The translations under genes and the position numbers were made by a program. A DNA stretch of 64,000 nt from Phaeosaccion multiseriatum (Eukaryota > Protista > Ochrophyta, other classes): NCBI GenBank assembly GCA_965112735.1, contig OZ218954.1, positions 3,534,001-3,598,000 of the forward strand, read 5' to 3'. Position 1 is the stretch's first letter, and every line of letters begins with the position of its first letter. Of the stretch, positions 20,798 through 62,126 are shown one piece after another. The notes beneath the pieces were generated by a model. That model did not search any database and was not told where the DNA came from. It saw nothing but the letters and a program-made list of their open reading frames with translations.

Positions 20798-22834
20798 ATG
20801 AACGATTTTGAGGAGGCGCTGGAGCGCATTCAAGAGTGGCGAGATCGGAGCGAGGGGGGGGTAGGCATTGACGAGCTTTCGCTTTTGCTGGCAGCCGTGC
20901 TTTCCACGGTCGACTTTAAGTCGCGCGCTGAGAGAGAAGGGCCATGGAAGACGAAGGGCCACACCCCCCTTCACGCGCTCGCGATGAGAGATGACGCCAT
21001 GGAGGTGCAGATGATGCGGGGAAGCGTGAAGCTGTTGAAGGATTGCGGGCTGGACATTAATGCGCAAAGAGGAGAAGAGAACTCGCGTGACGAGGGAGAG
21101 ACTCCACTGACCCTAGCGGCGTTGTATGGGCACTTTGGGTTGGTGCAGGCGCTCGTCGAGGAGGGCGCAGATGTGAACAAAAGTGATAACGAGTCCATTG
21201 TGCCCTTGGCTCAAGCTGCGGGTGGCATATTCGGGGATTCAACTTATCCCACGATCGTGGCTTACCTTTTGAAGCATGAGGCCACGGTGAAGGACAGCTT
21301 TGCCTTGAGCAGTGCCGCAGCAGCTGGTTGTCCGGAGTCAGTGAGCATGCTACTCAAGGCCGGGGCCGAGGTAGAGGAAAGACAATGGGATACCACACCA
21401 GTCCAGTCCTGCTGTGCGGGGCTGGGCTGGGGCAGCACCAGCGACAGATTGGAGGCCCTGTCCTTGCTGCTAGAGGCAGGAGCTGATTTGAACGTAAAGG
21501 ACGAGGTCGGTCGCAAGTCTCTCATGCACAGGGCCGCTTCTGCCGGGCACGGTGAACTCATCGACGACCTCTTCCGTCGAGGGCTGGCGGTGGACGCGAA
21601 GGACTCTGATCAGCGCACTCCTCTGCACTTCGCTGCTATGCACGGCAGCTCCACCTGTATGAAGGCGCTCATCCGCCTCGGTGCCTCCCTCGACGCTGTT
21701 GATTCCGATAAGAACACGCCACTCCACTTGGCTCTGCAACACGAGATGATGGACATGGCGGCCGAGCTGATCGACGCAGGATCCAACGTGAACGCCAAGC
21801 GAGACGGCAACATGGCACCCCTTCACCTGGCAGCGGCACGGGGCAGCATGAGGCTTGCGTACCTCCTGTTGGAGGCTGGGGCTGAGGTCGATGCTCTCAC
21901 TGACGGTGGGAGCAGCCCCTTGATGGTGTGCATATCTATGGCAAAGGACAACAACGTTTCAGCTCTGCTTCCGCGTGGATGGTTGTACCGGTCGAGGGAA
22001 GGCAGGAGGAAGGTGACGGCACTGCTACTAGAAGTGGGCGCTGCAGTCAGCAAGCCAGTCATGGCCTTGGTGGGCGAGAGCGATTGTGGGGATGTCGTTG
22101 CCGCATCTTTGAGCGAAGAGCGAGGGGCCCGACATGCTTCTGATCGTGTTTGCAGTACGGTGGCTCGGCATTTCTCCGGCTCTGCCTACTCTGAGGCCGC
22201 CAAGGAGGGCCGTGTGGTGAGAGTGCGCTTGGCAGACAGGGCGACGGGGGAGAGGAAGGAGACGCAGTACACACTGAGCATACCCCTGATGGAGCTGCTG
22301 ATGGGCAAGACGGGCGGCAGGCGACGAGAAGGAGGACTCTCTGACGCCTCGGACAGAGACGACACGGCCACAGGCAGTTTTCGCACCATGCTGGACCCGG
22401 CGGGGCGTGGCTTCATGGGCATCAAGGGCAAGGCCAAGGACGAGGTGGAGGTGACATTTGACGGAGTGGACTTTACCGAGGAGGGCTTTGCAGCTGTGGT
22501 GCAGTTCGTCACGACGGGTAGCGTCAAGAGCCTGCTTACCCGAGGGAGCCATGGGCCGATGAGCAGTAGCAGCAGCTCCGAGACGGTCGGCGGCGGTGAC
22601 GGAAGAGACGATGGGAGTAGAAGTGAGGCAGCAGGAGGGAGGAAGAGGCACCGCGTGAAGCTGTTTGACGAGGTGAAGGCTCAGCAGGCTGTGCAGGCAG
22701 CGGGCTTCTTCTGCATCGAGGCCATGTCGAGGGAGGTGAAGGCGCTCATCACTCTGTACGGCTTCGAGCTGGCCAAGGGGGGGGAGGAAGAGGAGCCACC
22801 GAGGAAGCGAAGCAGAGAAGGCCTCCAATCGTAG
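20798..22834 (+). CDS. Intronless ankyrin-repeat (~10 repeats) protein with C-terminal BTB/POZ-like domain and NLS-like tail, copy 1 (678 aa)
   Basis: TPLTLAA/TPLHFAA/TPLHLAL/APLHLAA...GADVN ankyrin consensus; BTB-like FRTML...GF...EVTFDGVD..EGFAAVVQFVTTG....QAAGFFCIEAMSREV; tail PPRKRSR. Ankyrin call is firm; BTB call is by-eye motif recognition. Confidence 0.88.
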   Translation: MNDFEEALERIQEWRDRSEGGVGIDELSLLLAAVLSTVDFKSRAEREGPWKTKGHTPLHALAMRDDAMEVQMMRGSVKLLKDCGLDINAQRGEENSRDEGETPLTLAALYGHFGLVQALVEEGADVNKSDNESIVPLAQAAGGIFGDSTYPTIVAYLLKHEATVKDSFALSSAAAAGCPESVSMLLKAGAEVEERQWDTTPVQSCCAGLGWGSTSDRLEALSLLLEAGADLNVKDEVGRKSLMHRAASAGHGELIDDLFRRGLAVDAKDSDQRTPLHFAAMHGSSTCMKALIRLGASLDAVDSDKNTPLHLALQHEMMDMAAELIDAGSNVNAKRDGNMAPLHLAAARGSMRLAYLLLEAGAEVDALTDGGSSPLMVCISMAKDNNVSALLPRGWLYRSREGRRKVTALLLEVGAAVSKPVMALVGESDCGDVVAASLSEERGARHASDRVCSTVARHFSGSAYSEAAKEGRVVRVRLADRATGERKETQYTLSIPLMELLMGKTGGRRREGGLSDASDRDDTATGSFRTMLDPAGRGFMGIKGKAKDEVEVTFDGVDFTEEGFAAVVQFVTTGSVKSLLTRGSHGPMSSSSSSETVGGGDGRDDGSRSEAAGGRKRHRVKLFDEVKAQQAVQAAGFFCIEAMSREVKALITLYGFELAKGGEEEEPPRKRSREGLQS

Positions 22835-23236
22835 CTCTGTGACCCTTTCCTCTCCAGCCGAGAGGAGTAGGGGAGCAGTGCTTTCCAGCCCTGACAGCCA
22901 ACACCATCAATGCTGTAACTGTATTCTGAGACGCCATCCAGGAGGACGGGTGACTGACTGAGCTGTTTGTTTTCGTGGTGCAAGCAAACGAATCAGGCCC
23001 GACAAGAGAAATACATTCATCACGAAGCCGTCCGAAGAGGAAGGGCAAGAGAGAAGAGGAAGAGGTCCATTGATATGTATGCGTGCGTACGCTTACGTAT
23101 ACCCCACCCAACCCCGAGCCCGAGCCTAAGCACACTGTGGGAGCGAAAATAATAGAAAAGCAACTCGAGACCCCCTTCGAAAGACTTTGGAGCAGCAGCA
23201 GAGGGGAGAGCCTAACCTCCCCTCGCACCTCCAATC

Positions 23237-23345
23237 TCAACCCCTGATACACTACACTATCCGCTATCCGCTATCGCCGGCGCCAGCCGGCGCGCTATCC
23301 CGCGGGTGCCATGTAGCGCGGTAGCTGCCCAAAAGTAAAAAAACT
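23237..23345. mobile_element. Transposon left-end fragment related to the 13197 TTAA-MITE, heading array unit 2 (same at 26401 for unit 3)
   Basis: TCAACCCCTGATACACTA (18 nt identical to the 13197 TIR) immediately after repeat R, followed by CTATCCGC and GCGCGCTATC motifs also present in that MITE. No matching right TIR seen; right boundary uncertain. Confidence 0.6.
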
Positions 23346-23961
23346 CTTTGACCCACCAATTTTTTTTTTTTGAATTTGTCTTGGTAGTAAGTACTAGTAT
23401 CTTCCTCCGGCAACGGCAGCTCCCCCACCACTACCTCTGTCCCCCCCTCTGCTGTGTTTGTTGCCACAGAGCCTCCTACGCCCGCCGCTAGACCTCAACA
23501 GGAGAGGCGCACAGCTCCTGCTCCGGACCGCCGCTCTCGCCCAGCACGCTCTTCACCAGAGCTCAGTCACCCCTAAGGGGGGGTGGATAAATTGTTCGTG
23601 GGCACACGGACGCCACCTGCATCAGTCAGGGCATAGGCCAGCGGGGCACTCGACCAGTGCACCTTTCTGCCGCTGCCCACGGATCTCGGCGCTCCAACGC
23701 AGCCAGAGGCACGTCGGGCCGCGGACGCCACGGCTCGCGCCGCACCAGCGCCTACGTAGCCTTCACGGCTCTTCTCGGAAGCGGGTCTTCTACTCTAGCG
23801 CGGTGTGTGAGACACAAGCGGCAAAGGTGGGCTGAATCACAGATACACAAGTAACCTGCCCTCCAAGTGGCGTAACCTGAGACACAAGCGGCAAAGGTGG
23901 GCTAAATCACAGATACACAAATCGCCTGCCCCCCATCTCACGCGGCGTAACCTGTATAGGT

Positions 23962-25998
23962 ATGAACGATTTTGAGGAGGCGCTGGAGCGCATTCAAGAG
24001 TGGCGAGATCGGAGCGAGGGGGGGGTAGGCATTGACGAGCTTTCGCTTTTGCTGGCAGCCGTGCTTTCCACGGTCGACTTTAAGTCGCGCGCTGAGAGAG
24101 AAGGGCCATGGAAGACGAAGGGCCACACCCCCCTTCACGCGCTCGCGATGAGAGATGAAGCCATGGAGGTGCAGATGCGGGGAAGCGTGAAGCTGTTGAA
24201 GGATTGCGGGCTGGACATTAATGCGCAAATAGGAGAAGAGTATGACGAGGGAGAGACTCCACTGACCCTAGCGGCGATGTATGGGCACTTTGGGTTGGTG
24301 CAGGGGCTCGTCGAGGAGGGCGCAGATGTGAACAAAAGTGATAACGAGTCCAATGTGCCCTTGGCTCAAGCTGCGGGTGGTGGCAAGTCCGGGGATTCAG
24401 CTTATCCCACGATCGTGGCTTACCTTTTGAAGCATGAGGCCACGGTGAAGGACAGCTTTGCCTTGCACCGCGCCGCACTATCCGGTTGTCCGGAGTCAGT
24501 GAGCATACTACTCAAGGCCGGGGCCGAGGTAGAGGAAAGACAATGGGATACCACACCAGTCCAGTTCTGCTGTGTGGGGCGGGGCAGGGGCAGCACCAGC
24601 GATAGATTGGAGGCCCTGTCCTTGCTGCTAGAGGCAGGAGCTGATTTGAACGTGAAGGACCAGTTCGGCTGCTCTCTCATGCACAAGGCCGCTTCTGCCG
24701 GGCACGGTGAACTCATCGACGACCTCTTCCGTCGAGGGCTGGCGGTGGACGCGAAGGACTCTGATCAGCGCACTCCTCTGCACTTCGCTGTTAGGAACGG
24801 TAATTCCTCAAGTGTGAAGGCGCTCATCCGCCTCGGTGCCCCCCTCGACGCTGTTGATTCCGATAAGAGCACGCCACTCCACTTGGCTCTGCAGTTCAAA
24901 AAAATGGACATTGCGGCCGAGCTGATCGACGAAGGAGCTAATGTGAACGCCAAGCGAGACGGCAACATTGCACCCCTTCATCTGGCAGCGGCACGGGGCA
25001 GCATGAGGCTTGCGTACCTCCTGTTGGAGGCTGGGGCTGAGATCGATGCTCTCACTGACGGTGGGAGCAGCCCCTTGATGGTGTGCATATCTATGGCAAA
25101 GGACAACAACGTTTCAGCTCTGCTTCGGCGTGGATGGTTGTACCGGCCGAGGGAAGGCAGGAGGAAGGTGACGGCACTGCTACTAGAAGTGGGCGCTGCA
25201 GTCAGCAAGCCAGTCATGGCCTTGGTGGGCGAGAGCGATTGTGGGGATGTCGTTGCCGCATCTTTGAGCGAAGAACGAGGGGCCCGACATGCTTCTGATC
25301 GTGTTTGCAATACTATAGCTGGACACATCTCCAGCTCTGCCTACTCTGAGGCCGCCAAGGAGGGCCGTGTGGTGAGAGTGCGCTTGGTAGACAGGACGAC
25401 AGGGAAGAGGAAGGAGACGCAGTACACACTGAGCATACCTCTGATGGAGCTGCTGATGGGCAAGGCGAGAGGGAGGCGACGAGAAGAGGGAGGGAGCTCT
25501 GACGACTCGGACAGAGACGACACGGCCACAGGCAGTTTTCGCACCATGCTGGACCCGGCGGGGCGTGGCTTCATGGGCATCAAGGGCAAGGCCAAGGACG
25601 AGGTGGAGATGACGTTTGACGGAGTGGACTTTACCGAGGAGGGCTTTGCAGCTGTGGTGCAGTTCGTCACGACGGGTAGCGTCAAGAGCCTGCTTACCCG
25701 AGGGCGCCATGGGCAGATGAGCAGTAGCACCAGCTCCGAGACGGCCGGTGGCGGCGGCGACAGAAGAGGTGGTGGGAGTAATAGTGAGGAAGCATTAGGA
25801 GAGAGGAAGAGGGAGCGCGTGAAGCTGTTTGACGATCTGAGAGCGGAGCAGGCTCTGCAGGCAGCGGACTTCTTCTGTATCGAGGCCATGTCGAGGGAGG
25901 TGAAGGCGCTCATGACTCTGTACGGCTTCGAGCTGGGCAAGGGGGGGGAGGAAGGGGAGCCACCGAGGAAGCGAAGCAGAGAAGGCCTCCAATCGTAG
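23962..25998 (+). CDS. Intronless ANK-BTB protein, copy 2 (678 aa)
   Basis: Same architecture as copy 1; open ORF; tail PPRKRSR. Confidence 0.88.
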   Translation: MNDFEEALERIQEWRDRSEGGVGIDELSLLLAAVLSTVDFKSRAEREGPWKTKGHTPLHALAMRDEAMEVQMRGSVKLLKDCGLDINAQIGEEYDEGETPLTLAAMYGHFGLVQGLVEEGADVNKSDNESNVPLAQAAGGGKSGDSAYPTIVAYLLKHEATVKDSFALHRAALSGCPESVSILLKAGAEVEERQWDTTPVQFCCVGRGRGSTSDRLEALSLLLEAGADLNVKDQFGCSLMHKAASAGHGELIDDLFRRGLAVDAKDSDQRTPLHFAVRNGNSSSVKALIRLGAPLDAVDSDKSTPLHLALQFKKMDIAAELIDEGANVNAKRDGNIAPLHLAAARGSMRLAYLLLEAGAEIDALTDGGSSPLMVCISMAKDNNVSALLRRGWLYRPREGRRKVTALLLEVGAAVSKPVMALVGESDCGDVVAASLSEERGARHASDRVCNTIAGHISSSAYSEAAKEGRVVRVRLVDRTTGKRKETQYTLSIPLMELLMGKARGRRREEGGSSDDSDRDDTATGSFRTMLDPAGRGFMGIKGKAKDEVEMTFDGVDFTEEGFAAVVQFVTTGSVKSLLTRGRHGQMSSSTSSETAGGGGDRRGGGSNSEEALGERKRERVKLFDDLRAEQALQAADFFCIEAMSREVKALMTLYGFELGKGGEEGEPPRKRSREGLQS

Positions 25999-27125
25999 CT
26001 CTGTGACCCTTTCCTCTCCAGCCGAGAGGAGTAGGGGAGCAGTGCTTTCCAGCCCTGACAGCCAACACCATCAATACTGTAACTGTATTTTGAGACGCCA
26101 TCCAGAAGGACCGGTGACTGACTGAGAGGTTTGTTTTCCTGATTCAAACAAACGAATCAGGCCCGACAAGAGAAATGCATTCATCATGAACCCGTCCGAA
26201 GAGGAAGGGCAAGAGAGAAGAGGAAGAGGTCCATTGATATGCATGCGTGCGTACGCTTACGTATACCCCACCCAACCCCGAGCCCGAGCCTAAGCACACT
26301 GTGGGAGCGAAAATAATAGAAAAGCAACTCGAGACCCCCTTCGAAAGACTTTGGAGCAGCAGCAGAGGGGAGAGCCTAACCTCCCCTCGCACCTCCAATC
26401 TCAACCCCTGATACACTACACTATCCGCTATCCGCTATCGCCGGCGCCAGCCGGCGCGCTATCCCCCGGGTGCCCAAGTAGCGCGGTAGCTGCCTAAAAG
26501 TAAAAAAACTCTTTCACCCCCCCATTTTTTTTTTTGAATTTGTCTTGGTAGTAAGTACTAGTATCTTCCTCCGGCAACGGCAGCTCCCCCACCACTACCT
26601 CTGTCCCCCCCTCTGCTGTGTTTGTTGCCACAGAGCCTCCTACGCCCGCCGCTAGACCTCAACAGGAGAGGCGCACAGCTCCTGCTCCGGACCGCCGCTC
26701 TCGCCCAGCACGCTCTTCACCAGAGCTCAGTCACCCCTAAGGGGGGGTGGATAAATTGTTCGTGGGCACACGGACGCCACCTGCATCAGTCAGGGCATAG
26801 GCCAGCGGGGCACTCGACCAGTGCACCTTTCTGCCGCTGCCCACGGATCTCGGCGCTCCAACGCAGCCAGAGGCACGTCGGGCCGCGGACGCCACGGCTC
26901 GCGCCGCACCAGCGCCTACGTAGCCTTCACGGCTCTTCTCGGAAGCGGGTCTTCTACTCTAGCGCGGTGTGTGAGACACAAGCGGCAAAGGTGGGCTGAA
27001 TCACAGATACACAAGTAACCTGCCCTCCAAGTGGCGTAACCTGAGACACAAGCGGCAAAGGTGGGCTAAATCACAGATACACAAATCGCCTGCCCCCCAT
27101 CTCACGCGGCGTAACCTGTATAGGT

Positions 27126-29153
27126 ATGAACGATTTTGAGGAGGCGCTGGAGCGCATTCAAGAGTGGCGAGATCGGAGCGAGGGGGGGGTAGGCATTGAC
27201 GAGCTTTCGCTTTTGCTGGCAGCCGTGCTTTCCACGGTCGACTTTAAGTCGCGCGCTGAGAGAGAAGGGCCATGGAAGACGAAGGGCCACACCCCCCTTC
27301 ACGCGCTCGCGATGAGAGATGAAGCCATGGAGGTGCAGATGCGGGGAAGCGTGAAGCTGTTGAAGGATTGCGGGCTGGACATTAATGCGCAAATAGGAGA
27401 AGAGTATGACGAGGGAGAGACTCCACTGACCCTAGCGGCGATGTATGGGCACTTTGGGTTGGTGCAGGGGCTCGTCGAGGAGGGCGCAGATGTGAACAAA
27501 AGTGATAACGAGTCCAATGTGCCCTTGGCTCAAGCTGCGGGTGGTGGCAAGTCCGGGGATTCAGCTTATCCCACGATCGTGGCTTACCTTTTGAAGCATG
27601 AGGCCACGGTGAAGGACAGCTTTGCCTTGCACCGCGCCGCACTATCCGGTTGTCCGGAGTCAGTGAGCATACTACTCAAGGCCGGGGCCGAGGTAGAGGA
27701 AAGACAATGGGATACCACACCAGTCCAGTTCTGCTGTGCGGGGCGGGGCAGGGGCAGCACCAGCGATAGATTGGAGGCCCTGTCCTTGCTGCTAGAGGCA
27801 GGAGCTGATTTGAACGTAAAGGACGAGGTCCGTCACAAGTCTCTCATGCACAGCGCCGCTTCTGCCGGGCACGGTGAACTCATCGACGACCTCTTCCGTC
27901 GAGGGCTGGCGGTGGACGCGAAGGACTCTGATCAGCGCACTCCTCTGCACTTCGCTGTTAGGAACGGTAATTCCTCAAGTGTGAAGGCGCTCATCCGCCT
28001 CGGTGCCCCCCTCGACGCTGTTGATTCCGATAAGAGCACGCCACTCCACTTGGCTCTGCAGTTCAAAAAAATGGACATTGCGGCCGAGCTGATCGACGCA
28101 GGAGCTAATGTGAACGCCAAGGGAGACGGCAACATTGCACCCCTTCATCTGGCAGCGGCATGGGGCAGCATGAGGCTTGTGTACCTTCTGTTGGAGGCTG
28201 GGGCTGAGATCGATGCTCTCACTGACGGTGGGAGCAGCCCCTTGATGGTGTGCATATCTATGGCAAAGGACAACAACGTTTCAGCTCTGGTTCGGCGTGG
28301 AGGGTTGTACCGGTTGAAAAAAGGCAGGAGGAAGGTGACGGCACTGCTACTAGAAGTGGGCGCTGCAGTCAGCAAGCCAGTCATGGCCTTGGTGGGCGAG
28401 AGCGATTGTGGGGATGTCGTTGCCGCATCTTTGAGCGAAGAACGAGGGGCCCGACATGCTTCTGATCGTGTTTGCAATACTATAGCTGGACACATCTCCA
28501 GCTCTGCCTACTCTGAGGCCGCCAAGGAGGGCCGTGTGGTGAGAGTGCGCTTGGTAGACAGGACGACAGGGAAGAGGAAGGAGACGCAGTACACACTGAG
28601 CATACCTCTGATGGAGCTGCTGATGGGCAAGGCGAGAGGGAGGCGACGAGAAGAGGGAGGGAGCTCTGACGACTCGGACAGAGACGACACGGCCACAGGC
28701 AGTTTTCGCACCATGCTGGACCCGGCGGGGCGTGGCTTCATGGGCATCAAGGGCAAGGCCAAGGACGAGGTGGAGGTGACATTTGACGGAGTGGACTTTA
28801 CCGAGGAGGGCTTTGCAGCTGTGGTGCAGTTCGTCACGACGGGTAGCGTCAAGAGCCTGCTTACCCGAGGGAGCCATGGGCCGATGAGCAGCAGCAGCAG
28901 CTCCGAGACGGTCGGCGGCGGTGACCGAAGAGACGATGGAAGTGAGGCAGCAGGAGGGAGGAAGAGGCACCGCGGGAAGCTGTTTGACGAGGTGAAGGCG
29001 AAGCAGGCTCTGCAGGCAGCGGGCTTCTTCTGCATCGAGGCCATGTCGAGGGAGGTGAAGGCGCTCATGACTCTGTACGGCTTCGAGCTGGCCAAGGGGG
29101 GGGAGGAAGAGGAGCCACCGAGGAAGCGAAGCAGAGAAGGCCTCCAATCGTAG
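27126..29153 (+). CDS. Intronless ANK-BTB protein, copy 3 (675 aa)
   Basis: Same architecture; N-terminal half close to copy 2, BTB loop and C-terminus close to copy 1. Confidence 0.88.
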   Translation: MNDFEEALERIQEWRDRSEGGVGIDELSLLLAAVLSTVDFKSRAEREGPWKTKGHTPLHALAMRDEAMEVQMRGSVKLLKDCGLDINAQIGEEYDEGETPLTLAAMYGHFGLVQGLVEEGADVNKSDNESNVPLAQAAGGGKSGDSAYPTIVAYLLKHEATVKDSFALHRAALSGCPESVSILLKAGAEVEERQWDTTPVQFCCAGRGRGSTSDRLEALSLLLEAGADLNVKDEVRHKSLMHSAASAGHGELIDDLFRRGLAVDAKDSDQRTPLHFAVRNGNSSSVKALIRLGAPLDAVDSDKSTPLHLALQFKKMDIAAELIDAGANVNAKGDGNIAPLHLAAAWGSMRLVYLLLEAGAEIDALTDGGSSPLMVCISMAKDNNVSALVRRGGLYRLKKGRRKVTALLLEVGAAVSKPVMALVGESDCGDVVAASLSEERGARHASDRVCNTIAGHISSSAYSEAAKEGRVVRVRLVDRTTGKRKETQYTLSIPLMELLMGKARGRRREEGGSSDDSDRDDTATGSFRTMLDPAGRGFMGIKGKAKDEVEVTFDGVDFTEEGFAAVVQFVTTGSVKSLLTRGSHGPMSSSSSSETVGGGDRRDDGSEAAGGRKRHRGKLFDEVKAKQALQAAGFFCIEAMSREVKALMTLYGFELAKGGEEEEPPRKRSREGLQS

Positions 29154-29843
29154 CTCTGTGACCCTTTCCTCTCCAGCCGAGAGGAGTAGGGGAGCAGTGC
29201 TTTCCAGCCCTGACAGCCAACACCATCAATGCTGTAACTGTATTTTGAGACGCCATCCAGGAGGACGGGTGACTGACTGAGCTGTTTGTTTTCGTGGTGC
29301 AAGCAAACGAATCAGGCCCGACAAGAGAAATGCATTCATCACGAACCCGTCCGAAGAGGAAGGGCAAGAGAGAAGAGGAAGAGGTCCATTGATATGTATG
29401 CGTGCGTACGCTTACGAATACCACACCCAACCCCGAGCCCCCTTCGAAAGACTTTGGACCAGCAGCGAGCCTAAGCACACTGTGGGAGCGAAAATAATAG
29501 AAAAGCAACAACGAAAGACTTTGGACCAGCAGCAGAGGGGAGAGCCTAACGTCCCCTCGCACCTCCAATCCCTTGCTTCCTCCCTCCCTCCCTCCCTCCC
29601 TCCCTCCCTCCCTCCCTCCCTCCCTCCCTCCCTCCCTCCCTTCCTCCCTCCCTTCCTCCCTCTCTCCCGCTCTCCATCAATCCCTCCATACATCCAAGTA
29701 AATCGCAAGAGCACAGCAAACGCTGACACGAGCACACAAAGGACAACAACAAGAAGAAGAGAAGACGCTTAAAACAAAAACAAAACACAGGAGCAGAAAA
29801 GCAGGCTCCTCCTCCTCCTCCTCCTCCTCCTCTCTTGACCACC

Positions 29844-32800: not shown

Positions 32801-35230
32801 CCATCTGTATCACCAACCCGCGTACCTGCATGATCCCCCCGGGAATGTAGGTACTCTTGGCCTCGTGAACGTTGTTGAGCATACGATTCAATCCTGTGAA
32901 TACAAAGTCAAAGTCCGAGGGCCCTGCCAGACCCGTCACGAGCATCCTCTTGTACACATTCACGCCACCCCCACCCCCACCCCCAGCAGTTGGTGATACG
33001 GCTATAGCATCTCCGTCGCCACCCCCTCCCCCCCTTCCCCGGGAACCCGCAGGAGCCTTCACTCGGTAGTCCCTCTCTTCTCGCTTCCCAGCTGCTCCTC
33101 CTCCCTCTCTTGCGCCTCCCCCCCCTTCCTCCCCTGTTCTGCCTTCTCCTCCTCCTCCTCCTCCTCCTTCTCCTCCTCCTGCTGCTGATTGCTGATGGGA
33201 CAGGTGTGATCCACTGCCACTGTCCAGCAACGCCACCAGCACCTGCAAATGCAAGCACCACATGGGCGGAGGAGAGGTAGGCAGGCAGACAGGCATATGG
33301 ACAAAGGAGAGGCAGGCAGGCGTACGGGGAAGGAGGTATGCACAAGCATACGGGCACATGTCAGTCAGATTTAAACCCCCACTCGCCAATCTTGGGAGCC
33401 AGAGCCAGAGCCAGCACCACCACCACCACCAGCAGCAGCAGCAGCGGCAGCAGCAGCAGTAGCGCCTAATCGCAAACTGAAACACTGCAGGATGTAACTG
33501 AACCTGAAACTGCAAGGTTCTGCACTGACCTGGGCTGCCATCTCCATCTGCTTGGTGGGTGCGTCGCTAACCATGCTGCTTCCGAAGGGCACTCCCCACC
33601 CCACGGGGTCGAAGGCGAGGGAGCAGTTCAGCAGAGACACAAACAGCTCAGGGGCGAAGGGTACGGAGGGGCGGGTCAGCTCTCGGCTGAAGCGGCTGTG
33701 GAGAAGGAGGGGGGGCATGGGGCAAGAGGAGGAGGGGAGGAGGAGGAGGAGGAGGAGGAGTGAGTGGAGTAGAAGTATGAGAAAGAGAGAAAGAGAGAGA
33801 GAGAGAGCTGGCATTGAGACAAAACACAGAGAAAGAGGAGTGGAGGAGAGAGGAAGGAAAGGGACGGCAGACCCGAGAGTGCCCACCCACCCCGCCCATC
33901 CACTCCACCCACCAACCCCCCTATACACATATATACATTCACACCCACACATACACACACACACAAGCACGGACGTACCCAGCGCCGGGGTTGAAGTGCT
34001 CATTGGACTGAAAGAGGGGCTCGCACAGCAGCGTGAGGAGGAGCCGGAGAACCTCACAGCGGTTACGTTCGAGGTGCCTCCCGTAGTGGATCTTCACGTC
34101 ACCGACCACCTGAAGGAGTTGGTGACACAGACGGAGGGAGGGAGAGAAAGAGAAAGGAAGGATTGTAGCGATGAGGGAGGTGTGTGTATGGTACACATGA
34201 GCTGTGGTGTTCTATGCTTGAAAGTCGATGCCCTAGTTCGCTCAACAAGAAAAGAGTTCAGCATTAGCGGAGGCAGACGGAAACAACCACATCCGCCACC
34301 GACAGACAGACAGAGAGAGAGAGAGATAAGGTCATGCGGCTTCGCTTCCTCTCTCTCCCTTCTCCCGAGCCTCTCTTCACTCACCTGCAGTCCCTTCTCC
34401 CAGCAGAGCTCTGGGAACTGTAGATCCAGCCCCAGGCGAGAGACGGGAGTGGCCGCTCCTGCGACAGCACGTGCCGCCTCCTCCTCCTCCCCACCACCAC
34501 CAGTAGCAGTGCTAGCCCCATCTTCGGTAAAGGACCCTGCTCTGAACCAGCGCTGCCTTGCTCGGGTCACTCTCTGCGCCGTGAAGGGGGAGACCTGGAC
34601 CGTGAAGGCTGGCAAGAAGAGAAGCTGCATCACCGCGTCGACCAGCACGCTGCCCAGAGGCACCACGCTCCCTGAGGTGTCTTCCTCGTCGCTCGGCTTC
34701 CAGAACAGCCGCTCGAGGAAAGGGTCCACCTCCTCTCCCTCCTCCCAGCCTTCTTCCTCCTCCCAAGAATCCCCTTCCTCTCCTCCCCCTCCTCCCCCGC
34801 TCTCCTCGGATGCCCCGTCCGCCCCCCCTCCTCCCTCCCCTTGCTCCTCCCCCCCCCCCCCCTCCTCCTCCCCATTCGCGTAGAGCGGTCGCCGCCTGTT
34901 ATATCCCTCCAGCAGGAAGGGCATGATTCGAGTGGTGATGCGTATACAGCACAGCGCGTCTTCAAAGCCCCGCCCCGCATGCTCCACTGGGGACTCCAGC
35001 ACGCTGCACAGCTTCGCCACGCAGCGATTGAACAGCGCCGCCACGTTGCCGGGCCTTGTCTTCCTTAAATTGCGTATGTGGGCAGGGGAGATCATCTCAA
35101 ACACCTCCTGCGCAGAGGCGTTGACGTTCCACAACTGGTTCCAGAAGTCATCGTCGGCAGGCGACACGTCGTGTGTATTGAGAGCTTCAAGCGCCTCTCG
35201 GAACTTCACCTTGCTCGCCCCGGCACCCAT
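29844..35230 (-). CDS. HID1: HID1 (dymeclin/HID-1 family Golgi trafficking protein), multi-exon
   Basis: N-terminus MGAGASKVKFREAL...DDDFWNQLW (myristoylation-type MGxxxSK), IRNLRKTRPGNVAALF, RIMPFLLE, LKLSGERNFGVSLNK, NNIIQYQ|YIGNPHLVYAIIR; C-terminus GLLPVPHPIVIRKYQPN...WGVIFVRN...FDGESIRLF. Confidence 0.92.
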
Positions 35231-35607
35231 CTTGGCCCCTCCCTCCCCTACTGTTTTGGTGTCTTTGTCTTTCTTTTTCTTGACCTTCACTTGTTCCCTC
35301 TTGTGGAAGAAAAAAGAGAGGCCTCGGCAAGTTGCTCTCTGTGTAGAGAAAGGCGCTGCCGGCGACAAGCAGATAGAGTGACAGCACACACAGCCTTCCA
35401 GACCAAGCGACAGCACACACAGACCTTGTATGGAGAGAGAGGGTTTAGAAAAAGGGGGCGGGAGACGTGAGTGCCAACTCGCTGTCCCTGTTGGTTTCCG
35501 ATACTCGTATTCTCCAACTTTGTTGCGCGCGCAAAATCCCCCTTCCCTTGTAGTGGCACGTCTAGGGCTGCACTTCCTGCTTCAGAGCTCTCTAATCACA
35601 CGCAACC

Positions 35608-39344: not shown

Positions 39345-39824
39345 ATGAAGGAGTGGATCGAGGGTGAGAGGGAGGATGGGAGGGCGGACAGAGAGGAAGA
39401 GGCAGCTGGACGGAAGGCAAAACGGGAAGGGGTCCCCCTGAATCACCGGGATGCATGTTTGAAGGGCCTTTTTGCCAGCTTTGGGCTGAACAAGGAGAGT
39501 TTTAGCCTTCCCTCGAAAGAAAAGCGCTCAAAGGTCGGTCAGTCTGTGGAGGAAGGAGGGATGACTCACGCAGGAGCTGACTCGTGCTACCGGCTCATGA
39601 CCAAGTGCGTCCAAAGTGTGTCGTCAATCATCTTCGGTGGTGCCTCGGCCGAGGAGGGGGTCGACGGCTTCGCACTTCGCCACCTGAAGCGGCGGAGAGC
39701 TCGAGGAGGTGGAGGTGCCGATGTGCTTGAGGAGTCTATGCGTGAGATGTTGGAGCATGCTTCCAAAAGGCAGAAGAAGAGGAAGAGGGCAGGTAGTTCT
39801 TCCGCAGCTGAGAACGAGACGTAG
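39345..39824 (+). CDS. Hypothetical protein (~159 aa from the first ATG), possibly one exon of an unrecognised gene
   Basis: Open frame with non-repetitive, protein-like composition and a basic cluster (KRQKKRKR); no recognised family. Confidence 0.3.
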   Translation: MKEWIEGEREDGRADREEEAAGRKAKREGVPLNHRDACLKGLFASFGLNKESFSLPSKEKRSKVGQSVEEGGMTHAGADSCYRLMTKCVQSVSSIIFGGASAEEGVDGFALRHLKRRRARGGGGADVLEESMREMLEHASKRQKKRKRAGSSSAAENET

Positions 39825-40058
39825 CTTGTTGCGAAAGTGTATAGAATCCAAGGCTTTGAAGAGAGAGGAGTACCGCTCCAATGCGTACCACTCTCCCGCA
39901 TTAGTTTGTTGCGAAAGTGTATAGAATCCAAGGCTTTGAAGACAGAGGAGTACCGCTCCAATAGTTACAACTCTCCCGCATTAGTTTGTTGCGAAAGTGT
40001 ATAGAATCCAAGGCTTTGAAGACAGAGGAGTACCGCTCCAATAGTTACAACTCTCCCC
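39822..40058. repeat. Minisatellite, 3 x 80 bp
   Basis: Unit TAGTTTGTTGCGAAAGTGTATAGAATCCAAGGCTTTGAAGACAGAGGAGTACCGCTCCAATAG... at 39822, 39902 and 39982. Confidence 0.92.
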
Positions 40059-49046: not shown

Positions 49047-49249
49047 CTCATGTATACAGTTAATGGCATGTTGGAAAAAAAAAGAAATGGTTGAAGCCGT
49101 CCAACCTGCTAACCTCTCATGTATACAGTTAATGGCATGTTGGGAAAAATAGAAATGGTCGAAGCCGTCCAACCTGCTAACCTCTCATGTATACAGTTAA
49201 TGGCATGTTGGGAAAAAAAGAAATGGTCGAAGCCGTCCAACCTGCTAAC
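49047..49249. repeat. Minisatellite, 3 x 68-69 bp, just beyond the stop codon of ANK-BTB copy 4
   Basis: Unit CTCATGTATACAGTTAATGGCATGTTGG(A)nGAAATGGTYGAAGCCGTCCAACCTGCTAAC at 49047, 49116 and 49184. Confidence 0.92.
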
Positions 49250-49288: not shown

Positions 49289-51258
49289 TCATTTAGCCAG
49301 CTCGAAGCCGTACAGAGTCATGAGCGCCTTCACCTCCCTCGACATGGCCTCCATACAGAAGAAGTCCGCTGCCTGCAGAGCCTGCTGCGCTCTTACCTCG
49401 TCAAACAGCATTTCGTGCTTCCTCTTTCTCTTTCCGACTGCCCCCCCACTACTCCCTCTGTCTCCTCCGCTATCACTGCCACCGCCCGTCTCAGAAGTTG
49501 TGCTGCTGCTATTGATGCCGGACCTACTCTCTGTGCTCAGCAGCCCACGACGCCCTCGGGTAAGCAGGCTCTTGACGCTACCCGTCGTGACGAACTGCAC
49601 CACAGCCGCAAAGCCCTCCTCGGTAAAGTCCACTCCGTCAAACGTCACCTCCACCTCGTCCTTGGCCTTGCCCTTGATACCCATGAAGCCACGCCCCGCC
49701 GGGTCCAGCATGGTGGGGAGACTGCCTGACGCCGTGTCATGCCTGTCCGAGCCGTCAGAGCTCCCTCCCTCCCCGTCAGTTTTGTTCATCAGCAGTTCCA
49801 TCAGGGGTATGCTCAGTGTGTACGGCGTCTCCCTGCTCTTCCCCGTTGTCCTGTCTACCAAGCGCACTCGCACCACACGGCCCTCCTTGGCGGCCTCAGT
49901 ATAGGCAGAGCCGGAAGAGATGTGTCCAGCTATGGTGTTGCAAACGCGGTCAGAGGCAGATAGTGCCGCTCGATCTTTACTCCAGGACGCGGTGATGACA
50001 TCCCCACAATCGCTCTCTCCAGCCAAGGCCATGACTGGCTTGGTGACGGCAGCGCCCATCTCCAGCAGGAGTGCCGCCACCTTCTCCCTATCTTTCTGTG
50101 CGCCTTTCAGACCGTGCCTCTCAAGCACTCCTAGGCAGTGGGCGTTCATGCACACCATCAAGGGGCTGCTCCTCGTGGAGGTCAGCGCATCGACCTCAGC
50201 CCCAGCCTCCAACAGGAGGTACGCAAGCCTCACGCTGCCCAATGCCGCTGCCAGATGAAGGGGTGTAATGTTGCCGTCTCGCTTGGCGTTCACATTGGCT
50301 CCTGCGTCGATCAGCTCGGCCGCAATGTCCATTCTCTCGAACTTCAGGGCACTGTGGAGCGGCGTGTTCTTACTGGAATCAAAAGCATCGAGGGAGGCTC
50401 CGAGGCGGATGAGCGCCTTCACACAGGTGGACATGCCCTTCATAGCAGCGAAGTGCAGAGGAGTGCGCTGATCAGAGGCCTTCGCGTCCACCTCCAGCCC
50501 TCGACGGAAGAGGACGTCGATAAGTTCACTGTGACCGGCAGCAGCGGCCTTGTGCATGAGAGAGCAGCCGAACTGGTCCTTCACGTTCAAATCAGCTCCT
50601 GCCTCTAGCAGCAAGGACAGGGCCTCCAATCTCCCGTCTGTGCTGCCAGAACTTCCCTCACAGCAGTGCTGGGCTGGTGTGGTACTATCGCGTCTTTCGT
50701 CTACCTCGGCCCCGGCCTTGAGAAGCATGCTCACTGACTCGGCACAACCGGCTTTTGCGGCACTCCACAAGGCGAGACTGTCCTTCACCCTGGCCTCATG
50801 CTTCAAAAGGTACGACACGATCGTGGGGTGACTTGTACCTCCGGACTTGCCACCCGCAGCTTGAGCCAAGGGCACAAAGGACTCGTAATTACGTTTGTTC
50901 ACATCTGCGCCTTCCTCCACGAGCCCCTGCACCAACCCGAAGTGCCCATGCAACGCCGCTTGGGACAGCGGAAAGTCTCTCTCACCCAACCCTCCTCCTC
51001 CTCCTCTTCCCCCATTAACGTCCAGCCCGTAATCCTTCAACAGCTTTACGCTTCCCCTCATCTGCACCCCCTTGTCCTCCATGGCCTCTTTCTCCGCGAG
51101 CGCGTGAAGAGGTTTAGGGTGTTTCTTCAGCGATTTAAAGTCGACTGAGGAGAGCACGGCTGCCAGCACGAGCGATAGCTCGTCTACGCCAACGCCCCTC
51201 CCCCCCTCGCTGCTGCTCCCATCAACCCACTCTTAATGCGCTGCAGCGCCACATTCAT
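49289..51258 (-). pseudogene. ANK-BTB copy 4 with a 1-nt frameshift near the 5' end and no C-terminal NLS; could still be expressed from the internal ATG at 51082
   Basis: Homologous start MNVALQRI at 51258. CGCATTAAGAGTGG versus CGCATTCAAGAGTGG in copies 1-3 (missing C, ~51235). Downstream frame is intact to ...GFELAK*. Confidence 0.7.
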
Positions 51259-57100: not shown

Positions 57101-59956
57101 TCCCTCCCTCCTCCTCCCTCTCTCACTCACCTCGTGGTTTCCGAGCAAGGTGTGCACGGAACCTCCCGCCTTTTCTGCCTGTAAGGCGAGTACGTAGAGC
57201 CATTCCTCAATGTCAAGGTCCCTGTCTCCTCGATCGAATATGTCCCCACACTGATGAGGCAAACACGCGCAGGTAAGGTGAGCCAGAGATGAGGCACAGA
57301 GAGAGGAGGAGCGGGGGAGGGGTAGCCCTTTCAATTCTGTAACGACCATGCAACGACCATGCAAAGTCATGCACACAAAGTCATACACACGCCCACACAG
57401 GGACACCCACACCCACACACACACATACACCCACACACACACATACACCCACCCACCCGCACACACGCACACACACACACCCTCACCCACACAAACACCC
57501 TCCCCCACGCCCACACTCACACTCGCACACACATACACACATACATACACACACGCACCTGCACCAGCACCGCATCCCCCCCTGCCCAATTGTCGCTTTC
57601 GTCGATGAGATTCGACATTTTAAGGCACTTTTGCAGTGCGTCTAGAGGGGGTGAGGGACAGGCAACGACAGTCAGAGCAGCGGTGGGAGGAGGAGGAGGA
57701 GGAGGAAGAAGAAGAAGAAGAAGAAGAAGAAGAAGAAGAAGAAGAAGAAGAAGAAGAAGAAGAAGAACAGGAGGAACAGGAGCAGGAGCAGGAGCGAGAA
57801 GATGAGGAACAGGAGGCGGAGGAACAGGAGCATGAGCAGGAGCAAGAAGAGGAGGGAGGAGAGGAAGAAGAGGAGCAGGAGGCGGCGGCGGAAGGGGGCA
57901 GGAGGAGGAGGAGGAGGAGGAGGAGGAGGAGGAGGAGGAGGAGGAGGAGGAGGAGGACAGACACACACGGGATATCTCCCCCTCGCTATGTCAAAACAGA
58001 GTATCATCTCTCCCCCCCCCGTACTCGACTTACAGGGTACGGACGTCTACCTGTCCCCCTGTGTTCCCTCTCTGTGTCTCCCTTCTCTTTTCTCTCTGTG
58101 TGTCCCTCTCTCTCTTTTCTCTCTCCCTCTCTCTCTCTCTCTCTGCCCCTCTCAATCTGTTCTCTCCCCCCCTCTCTTCTCTCTCTCTGCCCCTCTTCTC
58201 GCTCCGTGTCCCCCTCTCTTCTCTCTCTCTGTCTCAAGATTTCACCCTCTCTCTCTCTGTCTCCCTCTCCCTCTCCGTCTCACCCTCTCACACTCCCTAC
58301 CCTTCTCTCTCCACCCTGGGGGTAGGAGTACCAGCAAACCTCACCTCTGTCTCCGTGAATGTCGCCGAACACGACAAGCCTGTTGGGCATCGGCACCTCC
58401 GTTGGCGGTAAGCGATACTTACCGTACGAGCTCACACGTCGCCCATCCATTCCTAAGTAGAGGTGGGTATGCGAGCACGTGTGCGTGGGTGGGGGCGGCG
58501 GTACAAAGTGAGAGGGAGAGAAGATAGAGAGGAGAGGAAGAAGGGATCATGTCCAGATTTGGCTTGCGGGCCACTCTCTCCCCTCCGTGTTGCAAGCCAA
58601 AGCCGGACATACACGTAGAGAGAGAGAGATTTACCCTCCAGTCTTCGCTATCCCACCCCGCTCCAACGTCCAATACCCTCGACCAAAAGGTTGCCACAGG
58701 GCACATTGCCCCCTCTTTCTGACACTCCCCATTCCTCCCCCCCTCCCAGGCTCACTTCCTCCCTCCGTCCGTCCTACGTCACCCCCTCCCTCCCTCACAA
58801 GCGTTGTTGTCTCACCTCCTACTGGCGGGTCTGCCTGAGACACGGAAGACAAGTGTGCCTTCAGAGAGGAGCCACCTACCCCGCGGCGACCGTAGCCCCT
58901 GCTGCCACCATTTTTCATGCCCATATGACTCCCACTGCTACTGGTGGTGGTGGTGGTGCTGCTGCTGCGAATTCTATCAAAGCCGGTGCCGGTGCTGAAA
59001 CGGCGCCTGCTGCTGCCGCAACCGTGCTGCTGCTGCCCTCCGGCACAGGGGGGTGTTCTGCTTGTACAGTACATGACACTGCAACAGGGGGAGAGGGGAG
59101 AAGGGGGGGAGGGGGGCTTGGCTTCCAGCAGCAGCGGCTTCTAGGGAGAGACACTATTGCTGCGTCGAAGGGCGATTCTCTTGCCTCCTGCCCCAGATGG
59201 ATTGTGCTCGCAGTTTGAATAGAATCGACCCCACTCCATCCTCGCCACTCACGCGCTCACTCACATCCTAACTAGGTCACGCACTCACTATATCACGCAC
59301 TCACTCTCCCACTCACTCACTCACTCACTCCCCCACTCACTCACTCACTCAGCTCACACTCGCTCAACACACTCACTCCATTCACGCACGTACCTTGTAG
59401 CCATTGAGCTCGACGATGACACTGCTGATGACGATGTGGAGAAGAGGGAAGAGGGTGAGACGAATGCCAGCCCTCGCCGCCGCTGCTGCTGCTGCTGCTG
59501 CTGTTGCGGCCTGCGCTTTACGGAGTTGGCTCCTCCTGGTTTTTTTCTTCCTGCATGCTCCTCACGGGCCCCGGCCACGGCCGACAGAGCAGCAGCACGT
59601 ATCAGCCCATACGGCTTGACTAAGCTCTGCTGAGATGCCTGCTGATGCTCCTGCTGTTGCTGTTGCCCATGGATGCCTGCGGGATGGGGGTGGGGCAAAG
59701 GCTGATGCTGATGAAGGTGCTGCTGCTGTTGGTGCTGAAAGCGTGCGGGCGTTCCTCGGCCGCTGAAGAGGCTGCTCCCGGTGAGGATCGCCGCTCGCCC
59801 CGCTGCAGCGACAAAGGTGTGCAGGAGGCTGGGGCGAACGACAGAGAGGGCCCGCATGCTCTTCACACGAGGTGATTTGAGTGAGGAGGAGAATTGCCAT
59901 CCTGTGACTCCGGTGAACCATCTCCTCCACCACGCACGCGCAGCAGCCGAATCCAT
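53864..59956 (-). CDS. Shewanella-like protein phosphatase (SLP, calcineurin-like metallophosphoesterase), multi-exon, long low-complexity N-terminus
   Basis: RLVVFGDIHGD, NWAGGDAVLVQ|CGDIFDRG, LLGNHE, LLVHAGL, SLVWSRVY, RMIVGHTPQ, VWRVDTGM in order. Start is either 59956 or ~59857. Confidence 0.9.
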
Positions 59957-60004
59957 CCGCGAATCCGCTGGAAATCACAGATGTCATTTTTTTGAATTAA
60001 AAAA

Positions 60005-60043
<39 letters not shown>

Positions 60044-60062
60044 AGGGTCTTATTATCATAGC

Positions 60063-62126
60063 ATGGTGGGAATTAAGGAGGCGCTGAAGCTCATTCAAGA
60101 GTGGGTTGATGGGAGCAGCAGTAAGGGGAAGGGCGTTGGTGTGGGGGAACTTTCGCTTTGCTTGGCAGCCGTGCTGACCACCATCGACTTTGAGTCCCTG
60201 AAGACGAAGAAGGGCCAAACCCCTCTACACGCTCTTGGTGAACTGGATAGGAGTGCCATAGAGGGCAGGAATCTGCAGATGCGGGGAAGCGTGAAGCTAC
60301 TGAAGGACTGCGGGCTGGACATTGATGCGAGAGAAAGAGAATACGAAATGGATGGAGAAGTAGAGCTAGATAGGGGTGATGGCATGACCCCGCTGGTCCA
60401 AGTTGTATGCAACGGGCACTTCGATTTGGTGCAGGGGCTTGTGGAGCAGGGGGCAGATGTGAACAAGTGTGTTTATGGAGGCTTTTTTCCCTTGACAGCA
60501 GCTGCTGGTGGTAGAGACAATTGGGGCTGCTCGTACAGCTGTGACCCCATGATCATATCGTACCTGATGGAGCATGGGGCCAGGGTGGAGGACAGTAAGG
60601 CCTTGGACAGTGCCGCAGCAGCTGGTTGTCCTGAGTCTGTGGGGATACTACTCAAGGCTGGGGCCGAGGTGAATGAGCAACACGTATGGGAAACACCAGC
60701 CCAGTGTTGCTGTGGGGGGCAGGGCAACGGCAGCACTAGCGAGAGATTGAAGGCCCTGTACTTGCTGCTGGAGGCAGGAGCTGATTTGAACGTGAAGGAC
60801 AGATATGGTCTGTCTCTCTTGCACAAAGCCGCTTCTGCTGGTTACAGTGAACTCATCGACGAGCTCGTCCGTCGAGGGCTGGAGGTGGACACGAAGGACT
60901 CTGGTCAGCTTACTCCTCTGCACTTCGCTACTACGGACGGAAATTCCTCAAGTGTGAAGGCGCTCATCCGCCTCGGTGCCTCCCTCGACGCTGTTGATTC
61001 CAATAAGAACACGCCGCTCCACAGTGCTCTGCAGTACGGGAAGGAGGACATTGCTGCCGAGCTGATCGACGCAGGAGCCAACGTGAACGCCAAGCGAGAC
61101 GGCAACATTGCACCCCTTCACCTGGCAGCGGTATGGGGCAACATGAGGCTTACGTACCTCCTGTTGGAGGCTGGGGCTGAGGTCGACGCGCTGACCAACA
61201 CGGGAAGCAGCTCCTTGATGGTGTGCATGGCTCCTGAGAAGGACGACAACGTTTCAAACCTGTTCCGGTACGACGGTCCACCGAGAGAGTCCAAGGAACA
61301 GAGGGAGAAGGTGGCGGGGCTCCTGCTGGAGATGGGCGCTGCGGTCAGCAAGTCAGTCATGGCTCTGGTGGGCGAGAGCGATTGTGGGGACGTCATTGGG
61401 GCGCATTTCAGTAAGGAAAGGGACGCACGAGATACTTCTGATCGTGTTTGCAATACCATAGCTGGACACATCTCTTCCGGCTCTGCCTACTCTGAGGCCG
61501 CCAAGGAGGGCCGTGTGGTGAGAGTGCGTTTGGTAGACAGGACAACGGGGAAGAGAAAGGAGACGCAGTACACACTGAGTATACCCCTGATGGAGCTGCT
61601 GATGGACAAGACTGAGGGAGAGGGAGGGAGCTCTGACGGCTCGGACAGGCATGACACGGCTGCAGGCAGTCTCCCCACCATGCTGGACCCGTCGGGGCGT
61701 GGCTTCATGGGCATCAAGGGCAAGGCCAAAGACGAGGTGGAGGTAACGGTTGACGGAGTGGACTTTACTGAGGATGGCTTTGCAGCTGTGGTGCAGTTCG
61801 TCACGACGGGTAGCGTCAAGAGCCTGCTTACCCGAGGGCGCCATGGGCAGATGAGCAGTAGCACCAGCTCCGAGACGGCCGGTGGCGGCGGCGACAGAAG
61901 AGGTGGTGGGAGTAATAGTGAGGAAGCATTAGGAGAGAGGAAGAGTGAGCGTGTGAAGCTGTTTGACGATGTGAGAGCGGAGCAGGCTCTGCAGGCAGCG
62001 GGCTTCTTCTGCATCGAGGCCATGTCGAGGGAGGTGAAGGCGCTCATGACTCTCTACGGCTTTGAGCTGGGCAAGGAGACGGACGACGAGCCGCGGAGGA
62101 AGCGAAGCAGAGGAGTAGATCCTTAA
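60063..62126 (+). CDS. Intronless ANK-BTB protein, copy 5 (687 aa), the most divergent N-terminal repeats
   Basis: Same ankyrin array, BTB-like C-terminus and basic tail PRRKRSR. Confidence 0.88.
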   Translation: MVGIKEALKLIQEWVDGSSSKGKGVGVGELSLCLAAVLTTIDFESLKTKKGQTPLHALGELDRSAIEGRNLQMRGSVKLLKDCGLDIDAREREYEMDGEVELDRGDGMTPLVQVVCNGHFDLVQGLVEQGADVNKCVYGGFFPLTAAAGGRDNWGCSYSCDPMIISYLMEHGARVEDSKALDSAAAAGCPESVGILLKAGAEVNEQHVWETPAQCCCGGQGNGSTSERLKALYLLLEAGADLNVKDRYGLSLLHKAASAGYSELIDELVRRGLEVDTKDSGQLTPLHFATTDGNSSSVKALIRLGASLDAVDSNKNTPLHSALQYGKEDIAAELIDAGANVNAKRDGNIAPLHLAAVWGNMRLTYLLLEAGAEVDALTNTGSSSLMVCMAPEKDDNVSNLFRYDGPPRESKEQREKVAGLLLEMGAAVSKSVMALVGESDCGDVIGAHFSKERDARDTSDRVCNTIAGHISSGSAYSEAAKEGRVVRVRLVDRTTGKRKETQYTLSIPLMELLMDKTEGEGGSSDGSDRHDTAAGSLPTMLDPSGRGFMGIKGKAKDEVEVTVDGVDFTEDGFAAVVQFVTTGSVKSLLTRGRHGQMSSSTSSETAGGGGDRRGGGSNSEEALGERKSERVKLFDDVRAEQALQAAGFFCIEAMSREVKALMTLYGFELGKETDDEPRRKRSRGVDP

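Follow-up and report, generated by a model that had tools for sequence, protein, structure and literature searches.

In a 64,000-nucleotide stretch of the genome of the alga Phaeosaccion multiseriatum (contig OZ218954.1, positions 3,534,001 to 3,598,000; hereafter the window), we characterized five paralogous genes whose products carry ankyrin repeats followed by a predicted BTB-fold domain. We regard it as modestly probable that these genes belong to a large, lineage-specific family of intronless ankyrin-BTB adaptors, in which the ankyrin scaffold and the BTB domain are constrained, the binding face evolves fast, and variable patches are shuffled by gene conversion. To our knowledge, stramenopile algae have no well-described innate immune receptors beyond the candidate LRR-ROCO and NB-ARC-TPR families. 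A constant BTB output joined to a variable ankyrin face would be a new candidate immune-receptor family in this group.

The window is eukaryotic DNA of about 58% G+C in which microsatellites are present, and it holds exactly five paralogous long open reading frames (ORFs) of this type, all of them where a preliminary description of the same DNA had placed them (Table 1). Three are arranged in tandem, the fourth is inverted, and the fifth lies 31 kb past the tandem array. Relative to copy 1, protein identity is 89% for copy 2, 91% for copy 3, 75% for copy 4 and 70% for copy 5. The 2-kb ORFs have no introns, unlike the adjacent gene for the rRNA methyltransferase Spb1. A tblastn search of the window found no sixth copy or fragment. 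An exact look-up of copy 5 in public assemblies gave no record. Contigs of four sequencing runs were mapped to positions 20300-26200. These runs also cover intergenic DNA and are therefore genomic DNA. Summed word depth was ~110-145 per copy in intergenic DNA as opposed to 6000-7000 in the BTB part, about 50-fold the depth of single-copy DNA. This suggests, in a rough way only, that the genome contains tens of segments with at least 95% identity. The family is large and lineage-specific, with more copies in the genome than the five of the window. The earlier label of a five-member family thus fits the window but undercounts the genome, and one of its five members, copy 4, is a probable pseudogene.

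Pfam searches matched Ank_2 in all five copies (E = 8e-42 to 2e-60), and ankyrin was the sole Pfam family found. A search with the whole protein returned generic ankyrin proteins at ~30% identity and nothing closer. We set ten repeats in register, comprising five canonical 33-mers, a 32-mer (R4), three repeats with inserts (R1, R3 and R5) and an atypical last repeat (R10). A full-length AlphaFold model built with the five close paralogues was confident over residues 100-390, the ankyrin part. Across this register, the mean number of extra amino-acid states was 0.7-1.4 at repeat positions 33, 2, 3, 5, 13 and 14 and 0-0.67 at positions 17-32, and positions 1, 4, 10 and 16 were likewise variable. 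Every peptide string quoted in the preliminary description was located in its copy by the alignment and the register table. The variability of its hotspots was confirmed, but the wording that they differ in nearly every copy overstated the case, as several of them are shared by copy 2 with copy 3 or copy 4. The comparison with designed ankyrin repeat proteins (DARPins) is close, since the positions randomized in DARPin libraries (2, 3, 5, 13 and 14, with 33 less so) are those that vary most in the algal copies. The natural repeats differ from the designed ones in being irregular, three of them with inserts, and in varying at positions 1, 4, 10 and 16 as well. A large family of this build would in this sense be a natural test of the DARPin design principle.

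We then asked how the ratio of nonsynonymous to synonymous rates (omega) is distributed along the gene. Pairwise Nei-Gojobori estimates were 0.5-1.0 over the whole gene and 0.3-0.7 in the C-terminal part. A partitioned likelihood model (GY94/F3x4, with one tree and one synonymous scale), in which 52 codons at the DARPin positions were chosen a priori as a partition, gave an omega of 1.74 at these positions, 0.68 at the other positions from 1 to 16, 0.23 at positions 17-32 (helix 2 and loop) and 0.36 in the BTB region. For the DARPin positions, the data rejected omega = 1 (p = 1.3e-4) as well as an omega shared with the framework (p = 2e-23). As a control for gene conversion we used three-taxon star trees, because three taxa cannot have discordant topologies, and these gave an omega of 1.6-1.8 at the DARPin positions (p = 5e-4 to 6e-3). 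When the synonymous rate was shared with the interleaved codons only, omega was 1.5-1.64 (p = 0.011-0.065). In our reading, the ankyrin scaffold and the BTB core are under purifying selection. The binding face changes at five to eight times the rate of the scaffold, a pace that equals or exceeds neutrality. Codon site models, which the preliminary description had proposed as a check, were also fitted. The likelihood-ratio test statistic (LRT) of M2a against M1a came to 65 with the five taxa and to 21-36 with the star trees. This strongly significant signal was restricted to the ankyrin region, with an LRT of 0.5-3 in the BTB region that served as internal control, and in 14 null simulations under plain M1a the LRT never rose above 5.3. 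The six DARPin positions showed a 6.7-fold enrichment in sites of the fast class (posterior > 0.5; p = 8e-7), which together with the register table bears out the earlier statement that the variable sites are those randomized in DARPin libraries.

The output end of the protein is predicted, from the model of a relative, to be a BTB domain at the level of its fold, in a subfamily that current sequence profiles miss. Full proteins gave no Pfam match to BTB/POZ (PF00651) at E<=0.1. Word matching with the C-terminal region produced no hits, probably because low-complexity words dominated it. When the C-terminal domain was compared by profile, exhaustively, with 1.84 billion representative proteins, only four relatives emerged, P0121-P0124 (E = 4e-14 to 2e-6). 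All four are singletons from one metagenome (ENA assembly ERZ1426853), share ~30-35% identity with one another, and have N-terminal ankyrin repeats followed by the same C-terminal domain. Because the C-terminus of the window protein could not be modelled confidently, we modelled the compact C-terminal domain of P0122 instead, a protein whose BTB domain shares 34-37% identity with that of the window copies. AlphaFold, run on a nine-sequence alignment, gave a predicted local distance difference test score (pLDDT) of 71 and a predicted template modelling score (pTM) of 0.68. As criterion for the BTB/POZ fold we took the order B1-B2-A1-A2-B3-A3-A4-A5, three strands and five helices, superposable on solved domains. 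The P0122 model has the BTB order of strands and helices, and the strand and helix order of the low-confidence window model agrees with it.

Structure comparison of the P0122 model points the same way. The top 50 Foldseek matches in the PDB were BTB/POZ, Skp1 or KCTD chains, barring two chains of 6sga (trypanosome mitoribosome assemblosome) at ranks 42 and 48, and the top matches in Swiss-Prot were all BTB domains. In the viral library (BFVD) the matches were overwhelmingly of BTB fold, with a DUF262 protein as a low-ranked exception; the likeness there was at fold level only and no nearer than that to cellular domains. VIA-align superposed the model on the KEAP1 BTB domain with a Z of 10.5 and a root-mean-square deviation of 2.6 A over 113 residues, and 166 chains scored Z >= 8. 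For the window protein itself, ESM features of residues 468-675 of copy 5 lay nearest to BTB clusters (score 0.90), as did the language-model features of P0122 (0.92). Together these results uphold the BTB assignment that had been proposed for the C-terminus, on the homologue's model and on the language-model features of the window protein. The domain also holds two disordered inserts. Two stretches of basic residues, PPRKRSR at the tail and RKRHR in the linker between A3 and A4, resemble nuclear localization signals (NLSs), from which a nuclear location may be surmised.

Gene conversion, which the preliminary description did not take into account, explains part of the variation among the copies, as read from their alignment. 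In the array, ~380 nt of upstream sequence and the first 200 nt of the coding sequence (CDS) are 100% identical in all three units, and the remaining CDS differs block-wise by 5-13% per 100 nt. The identical stretches may reflect either very recent homogenization of the promoter and N-terminal cap or constraint. Copies 2 and 3 are identical at 183 consecutive polymorphic sites. One tract of copy 2 covers the beta-turn and helix-1 tip of repeat 6; over a run of 19 polymorphic sites it reads as the inverted copy 4 does, and copy 3 keeps the copy 1 pattern. A second tract of copy 2 lies in the disordered linker inside the BTB region and agrees with the distal copy 5 over a run of 36 polymorphic sites, where copy 3 again has the copy 1 pattern. 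The permutation p was 0.0005 for each run. Such a mosaic fits ectopic conversion from dispersed paralogues that are homologous within the CDS only. With its tandem array, its dispersed copies and these significant tracts, the family is a clustered, lineage-specific expansion with exchange of variable segments.

Several results weigh against the reading of these genes as a diversifying family of adaptors. Pairwise omega at the DARPin positions was 0.57-2.1 and never significantly above 1. When the codons at these positions were given an overall rate of their own, the rate multiplier became 1.5-1.8 and omega 1.0-1.2, which is not significant, and this model fits as well as the one with omega ~1.7. 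When strong among-site rate variation was built into the M1a null, one of five runs reached an LRT of 21.7. A null with rate heterogeneity can thus mimic the site-model result, which is unsafe when taken alone. One of the five copies, copy 4, is broken, and the sequencing runs that hold family sequence are genomic DNA, with none shown to be RNA. For the C-terminal domain, there was no Pfam BTB match at E<=10 among nine C-terminal domains (the last ~220 residues), and a profile search of PDB sequences returned no BTB chain but only chance matches to EF-hand kinases. The window protein's own BTB region had a pLDDT < 50 in the full-length AlphaFold model, and the BTB fold is assigned to it through a relative with ~35% identity in that domain. 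Finally, a phi-x-E motif was not evident between A2 and B3 on inspection of sequence alignments, and the proteins end 10-25 residues past the last BTB helix.

The first of these points would be expected of an ordinary young multigene family, in which exposed ankyrin positions are unconstrained and vary by neutral drift and patchy gene conversion with no repertoire function. If the variation arose in this way, that is all the finding would amount to. In addition to the equally good fit of the own-rate model, the pairwise estimates, the rate-heterogeneity null and the decay of copy 4, the comparison of copies 2 and 3 is in keeping with drift and conversion. The preliminary description had noted that almost all of their ankyrin-region differences change the amino acid, and the count is indeed 14 nonsynonymous to 2 synonymous changes. 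However, this ratio is not significantly above the neutral expectation (binomial, p about 0.23), and about half of the replacement excess falls in one conversion tract. Nevertheless, we think the neutral account unlikely, if far from negligible. Exposed residues of functional proteins usually have an omega well below 1, whereas here the canonical ligand face is at or above 1, with interleaved codons at 0.6-0.7 and helix 2 at 0.2. The rise in synonymous rate that the account needs would be confined to codons spaced 1-10 codons apart, for which there is no obvious mutational cause. Block-wise conversion is excluded as the cause, since neighbouring codons in the same blocks are less elevated. Across models, omega at the DARPin positions is 1.0-1.9 and significantly above 1 only with shared synonymous rates. 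Of the two causes, diversifying selection on the binding face seems the more plausible to us, since no obvious mechanism would raise the synonymous rate in interleaved codons alone. It is not proven, because five recombining sequences cannot prove it. The proposal of a diversifying family therefore stands for the purifying selection on scaffold and BTB and for an omega of at least 1 on the binding face, and an omega above 1 is not established. The same applies to the codon site models, which are strongly significant but not robust to rate heterogeneity.

The last two points bear on Cullin-3, whose docking to the predicted BTB domain we treat as an open inference by analogy. The comparison of motifs was by sequence inspection and not by residue-level structural alignment; by this measure, the loop equivalent to the phi-x-E site holds a family-specific invariant L-x-P-x3-G-F without an acidic residue. 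There is no room for a 3-box, because the protein ends so soon after the last BTB helix. Both features would be natural if the BTB fold were a module for dimerization or oligomerization only, recruiting no cullin, and the proteins were nuclear scaffolds or regulators in the manner of BTB-zinc-finger proteins or the plant BTB-ankyrin proteins of NPR1 type. The structural neighbours include many BTB-zinc-finger domains that work by dimerization, and NLS-like basic patches occur in the tail and linker. The first helix of the P0122 model aligns from residue 61 of KEAP1, and the N-terminal part of the KEAP1 BTB domain, from the region of residue 61, contributes to the dimer interface. SPOP-type Cullin-3 adaptors, however, are built as a substrate module, a BTB domain and a C-terminal basic signal, which is the order found here. 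In Schizosaccharomyces pombe, BTB-ankyrin proteins bind the Cul3 homologue (PMC1257465). On balance, a role restricted to dimerization seems doubtful to us, although it deserves weight.

We therefore return to the adaptor reading and propose the following as the most likely mode of action. The family would consist of adaptors with differing binding specificities and one constant output module, each protein running from a helical cap through about ten ankyrin repeats to a very divergent BTB/POZ-fold domain and a short basic NLS-like tail. Purifying selection keeps the scaffold and the BTB core, and the ligand face, made of the beta-turn tips and the exposed helix-1 positions, changes at least as fast as neutrality allows for. 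The variable patches are shuffled by ectopic gene conversion, in which tandem, inverted and distant copies take part. The BTB domain would dimerize and might also dock a ligase of the Cullin-3 type, on the pattern of SPOP-like MATH-BTB proteins, whose domains come in the same order. The data themselves show the family, the register of its variation, the BTB fold on a relative's model, the contrast in rates and the conversion tracts; from these we infer diversifying selection, diversity of ligands, Cullin-3 or another partner, a nuclear location and any role in conflict with viruses.

Among known systems, the MATH-BTB proteins (SPOP-like, in nematodes and grasses) are nearest in design. They too have a substrate module N-terminal to the BTB domain and then a basic C-terminal signal, and they form lineage-specific clustered families that evolve fast only on the substrate surface and conserve the BTB domain. 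The algal module, in contrast, is an ankyrin solenoid and not a MATH domain, the algal BTB domain is too divergent for Pfam, and without a 3-box or an evident phi-x-E motif the link to Cullin-3 is by analogy. In the ankyrin repeats of fungal NOD-like receptors, selected sites lie on the concave face and the repeats evolve in concert (PMC4986451). The fungal repeats share with the algal ones a conserved scaffold, variation on the concave face (inner helices and beta-hairpins) and shuffling by recombination (PMC4986451). The fungal proteins, however, carry NACHT/NB-ARC and effector domains and have highly similar repeats within one gene, whereas the algal repeats are dissimilar within a protein, vary between paralogues and lead into a BTB-fold output. 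Ankyrin repeats and BTB domains are also combined in S. pombe Btb1-3, ABTB1 and plant NPR1/BOP (PMC1257465), but these are few, conserved genes of single-copy type with other domain orders or double BTBs. Word, PDB-profile and Pfam searches detected no sequence similarity between the algal BTB part and the known BTB-ankyrin proteins. Combinations of BTB and ankyrin domains occur widely, though not in the form of large variable families. Finally, the ANK/PRANC F-box-like and BTB-Kelch proteins of poxviruses and giant viruses also join N-terminal ankyrins to a C-terminal module of cullin-ligase adaptor type in multicopy, fast-evolving families, and it is on giant-virus-like contigs that the algal family has its nearest relatives. 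The algal C-terminal module differs in being a BTB fold rather than an F-box, and the algal copies sit in cellular DNA among host genes.

This viral likeness raises the question of origin. An alignment of copy 2 with P0121 runs collinearly through 624 columns (32% identity, E = 2e-59). The contig that encodes P0121 is 11.8 kb long with ten tightly packed genes on both strands, including a glutaredoxin and Pox_VLTF3, a late transcription factor that is a core gene of the Nucleocytoviricota. The contig of P0122 is similarly dense, with 15 genes in 10.3 kb, and a RING protein is present. These ERZ1426853 contigs resemble those of a giant virus in which the ankyrin-BTB family has expanded separately. 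So far the BTB subfamily is known from the Phaeosaccion alga and from giant-virus-like contigs alone, a link that the preliminary description had missed. This distribution suggests that host and virus have exchanged genes, and the family may be shared between the alga and giant viruses. The window genes could then be viral host-manipulating adaptors, comparable to the ankyrin/F-box and BTB-Kelch proteins of poxviruses, that were endogenized, multiplied and are now relics or domesticated. Their sole relatives would fit such an origin or exchange, as would the collinearity with P0121 and the lack of introns beside a neighbour with at least six exons. We consider it improbable nonetheless, because the copies sit among ordinary intron-bearing host genes and not viral genes, their G+C content at third codon positions (GC3) of 0.67-0.71 equals that of host exons, and purifying selection in the host acts on their scaffold and BTB. 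Moreover, scans of IMG/VR and JGI metagenome contigs with the C-terminal alignment gave no confirmed relatives, and any transfer may equally have run from host to virus, as viruses often capture host genes. On the same grounds, we rejected recent horizontal transfer as judged by composition, with GC3 equal to that of host genes, and we rejected the window as an endogenous giant virus, with intron-bearing host genes as neighbours.

A bolder form of the adaptor reading, which we rate as a distinctly long shot, is that alga and giant viruses share ankyrin-BTB adaptors as opponents. Dozens of host copies would form a selected and reshuffled, innate recognition repertoire encoded in the germline, and the virus's own divergent copies would redirect the same ligase machinery. 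If true, this would be an arms race with the same module on both sides, and a natural counterpart of a DARPin library.

Table 1. Coordinates of the ankyrin-BTB copies, their parts and related features in the window.
Feature	Coordinates	Strand	Details or evidence
Tandem array, three 3164-bp units, one ankyrin-BTB gene per unit	20420..29400 (approximate ends)	+	Offset-3164 identity profile, three-unit alignment, repeat families
Identical stretches of the tandem units	20420-20993, 23584-24157, 26748-27321		
Copy 1	20798..22834	+	Intact intronless ORF, 678 aa
Copy 1, ankyrin repeats	20963-21931	+	
Copy 1, BTB-fold region	22208-22771	+	
Copy 1, basic tail	22796-22816	+	PPRKRSR
Copy 2	23962..25998	+	Intact ORF, 678 aa
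Copy 2, ankyrin repeats	24127-25086	+	
Copy 2, BTB-fold region	25363-25935	+	
Copy 2, basic tail	25960-25980	+	
Copy 2, conversion tract	24610..24687	+	Beta-turn and helix-1 tip of repeat 6
Copy 2, conversion tract	25648..25806	+	Disordered linker inside BTB region
Copy 3	27126..29153	+	Intact ORF, 675 aa
Copy 3, ankyrin repeats	27291-28253	+	
Copy 3, BTB-fold region	28530-29090	+	
Copy 3, basic tail	29115-29135	+	
Copy 4	49289..51258 (open frame 51169-49289)	-	Inverted, damaged; sequence reading, tblastn
Copy 4, ankyrin repeats	50150-51115	-	
Copy 4, BTB-fold region	49298-49882	-	
Copy 5	60063..62126	+	Most divergent, intact ORF, 687 aa
Copy 5, ankyrin repeats	60219-61226	+	
Copy 5, BTB-fold region	61509-62069	+	
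Copy 5, basic tail	62091-62111	+	PRRKRSR

Copy 4 is damaged at both ends. At the 5′ end, the loss of one nucleotide near 51231 leads to an in-frame TAA at 51235-51233, and the ATG at 51258 is the likely former start codon. At the 3′ end, homology with the other copies ends directly after GFELAK and the acidic/basic tail is gone. From these features copy 4 is probably a pseudogene or a truncated variant. Two minisatellites of three units each, with 96% matches, occur at 49047-49249 (68 nt) and 39822-40057 (80 nt). Because the 68-nt minisatellite begins exactly where the homology of truncated copy 4 stops, an insertion or rearrangement may have removed the 3′ end of this copy.

Directly upstream of the array lies the gene for Spb1, an S-adenosylmethionine-dependent rRNA methyltransferase, with at least six exons across 13623-19151; its best matches are in Tribonema minus (69% identity) and brown algae (65-67%), in line with an ochrophyte alga close to the Xanthophyceae and Phaeophyceae that has no entry of its own in the protein database. 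A 32-nt tandem repeat occupies 19877-20116, just upstream of the array, and is related to a short G+C-rich element (CTATCCGCTATCC...GCCGGCGCCAGCCGGCGCGC) in the array's intergenic spacer at 23255-23451. The summed word depth of the spacer element was ~82,000 in run X1, as opposed to ~120 for single-copy DNA, with numerous loose ends and small internal joints, and the element is a very high-copy repeat of the Phaeosaccion genome. Between the ankyrin-BTB copies, an ORF at 34094-35416 on the minus strand, which is probably a host gene with exons, begins with MGAGASK and thereby with a possible signal for N-myristoylation, and continues with a conserved-looking domain and low-complexity inserts. 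Lastly, a perfect (TCC)n microsatellite of ~407 units (1.2 kb, 100% matches) at 62256-63475, 130 nt past the stop codon of copy 5, yields four long spurious ORFs.

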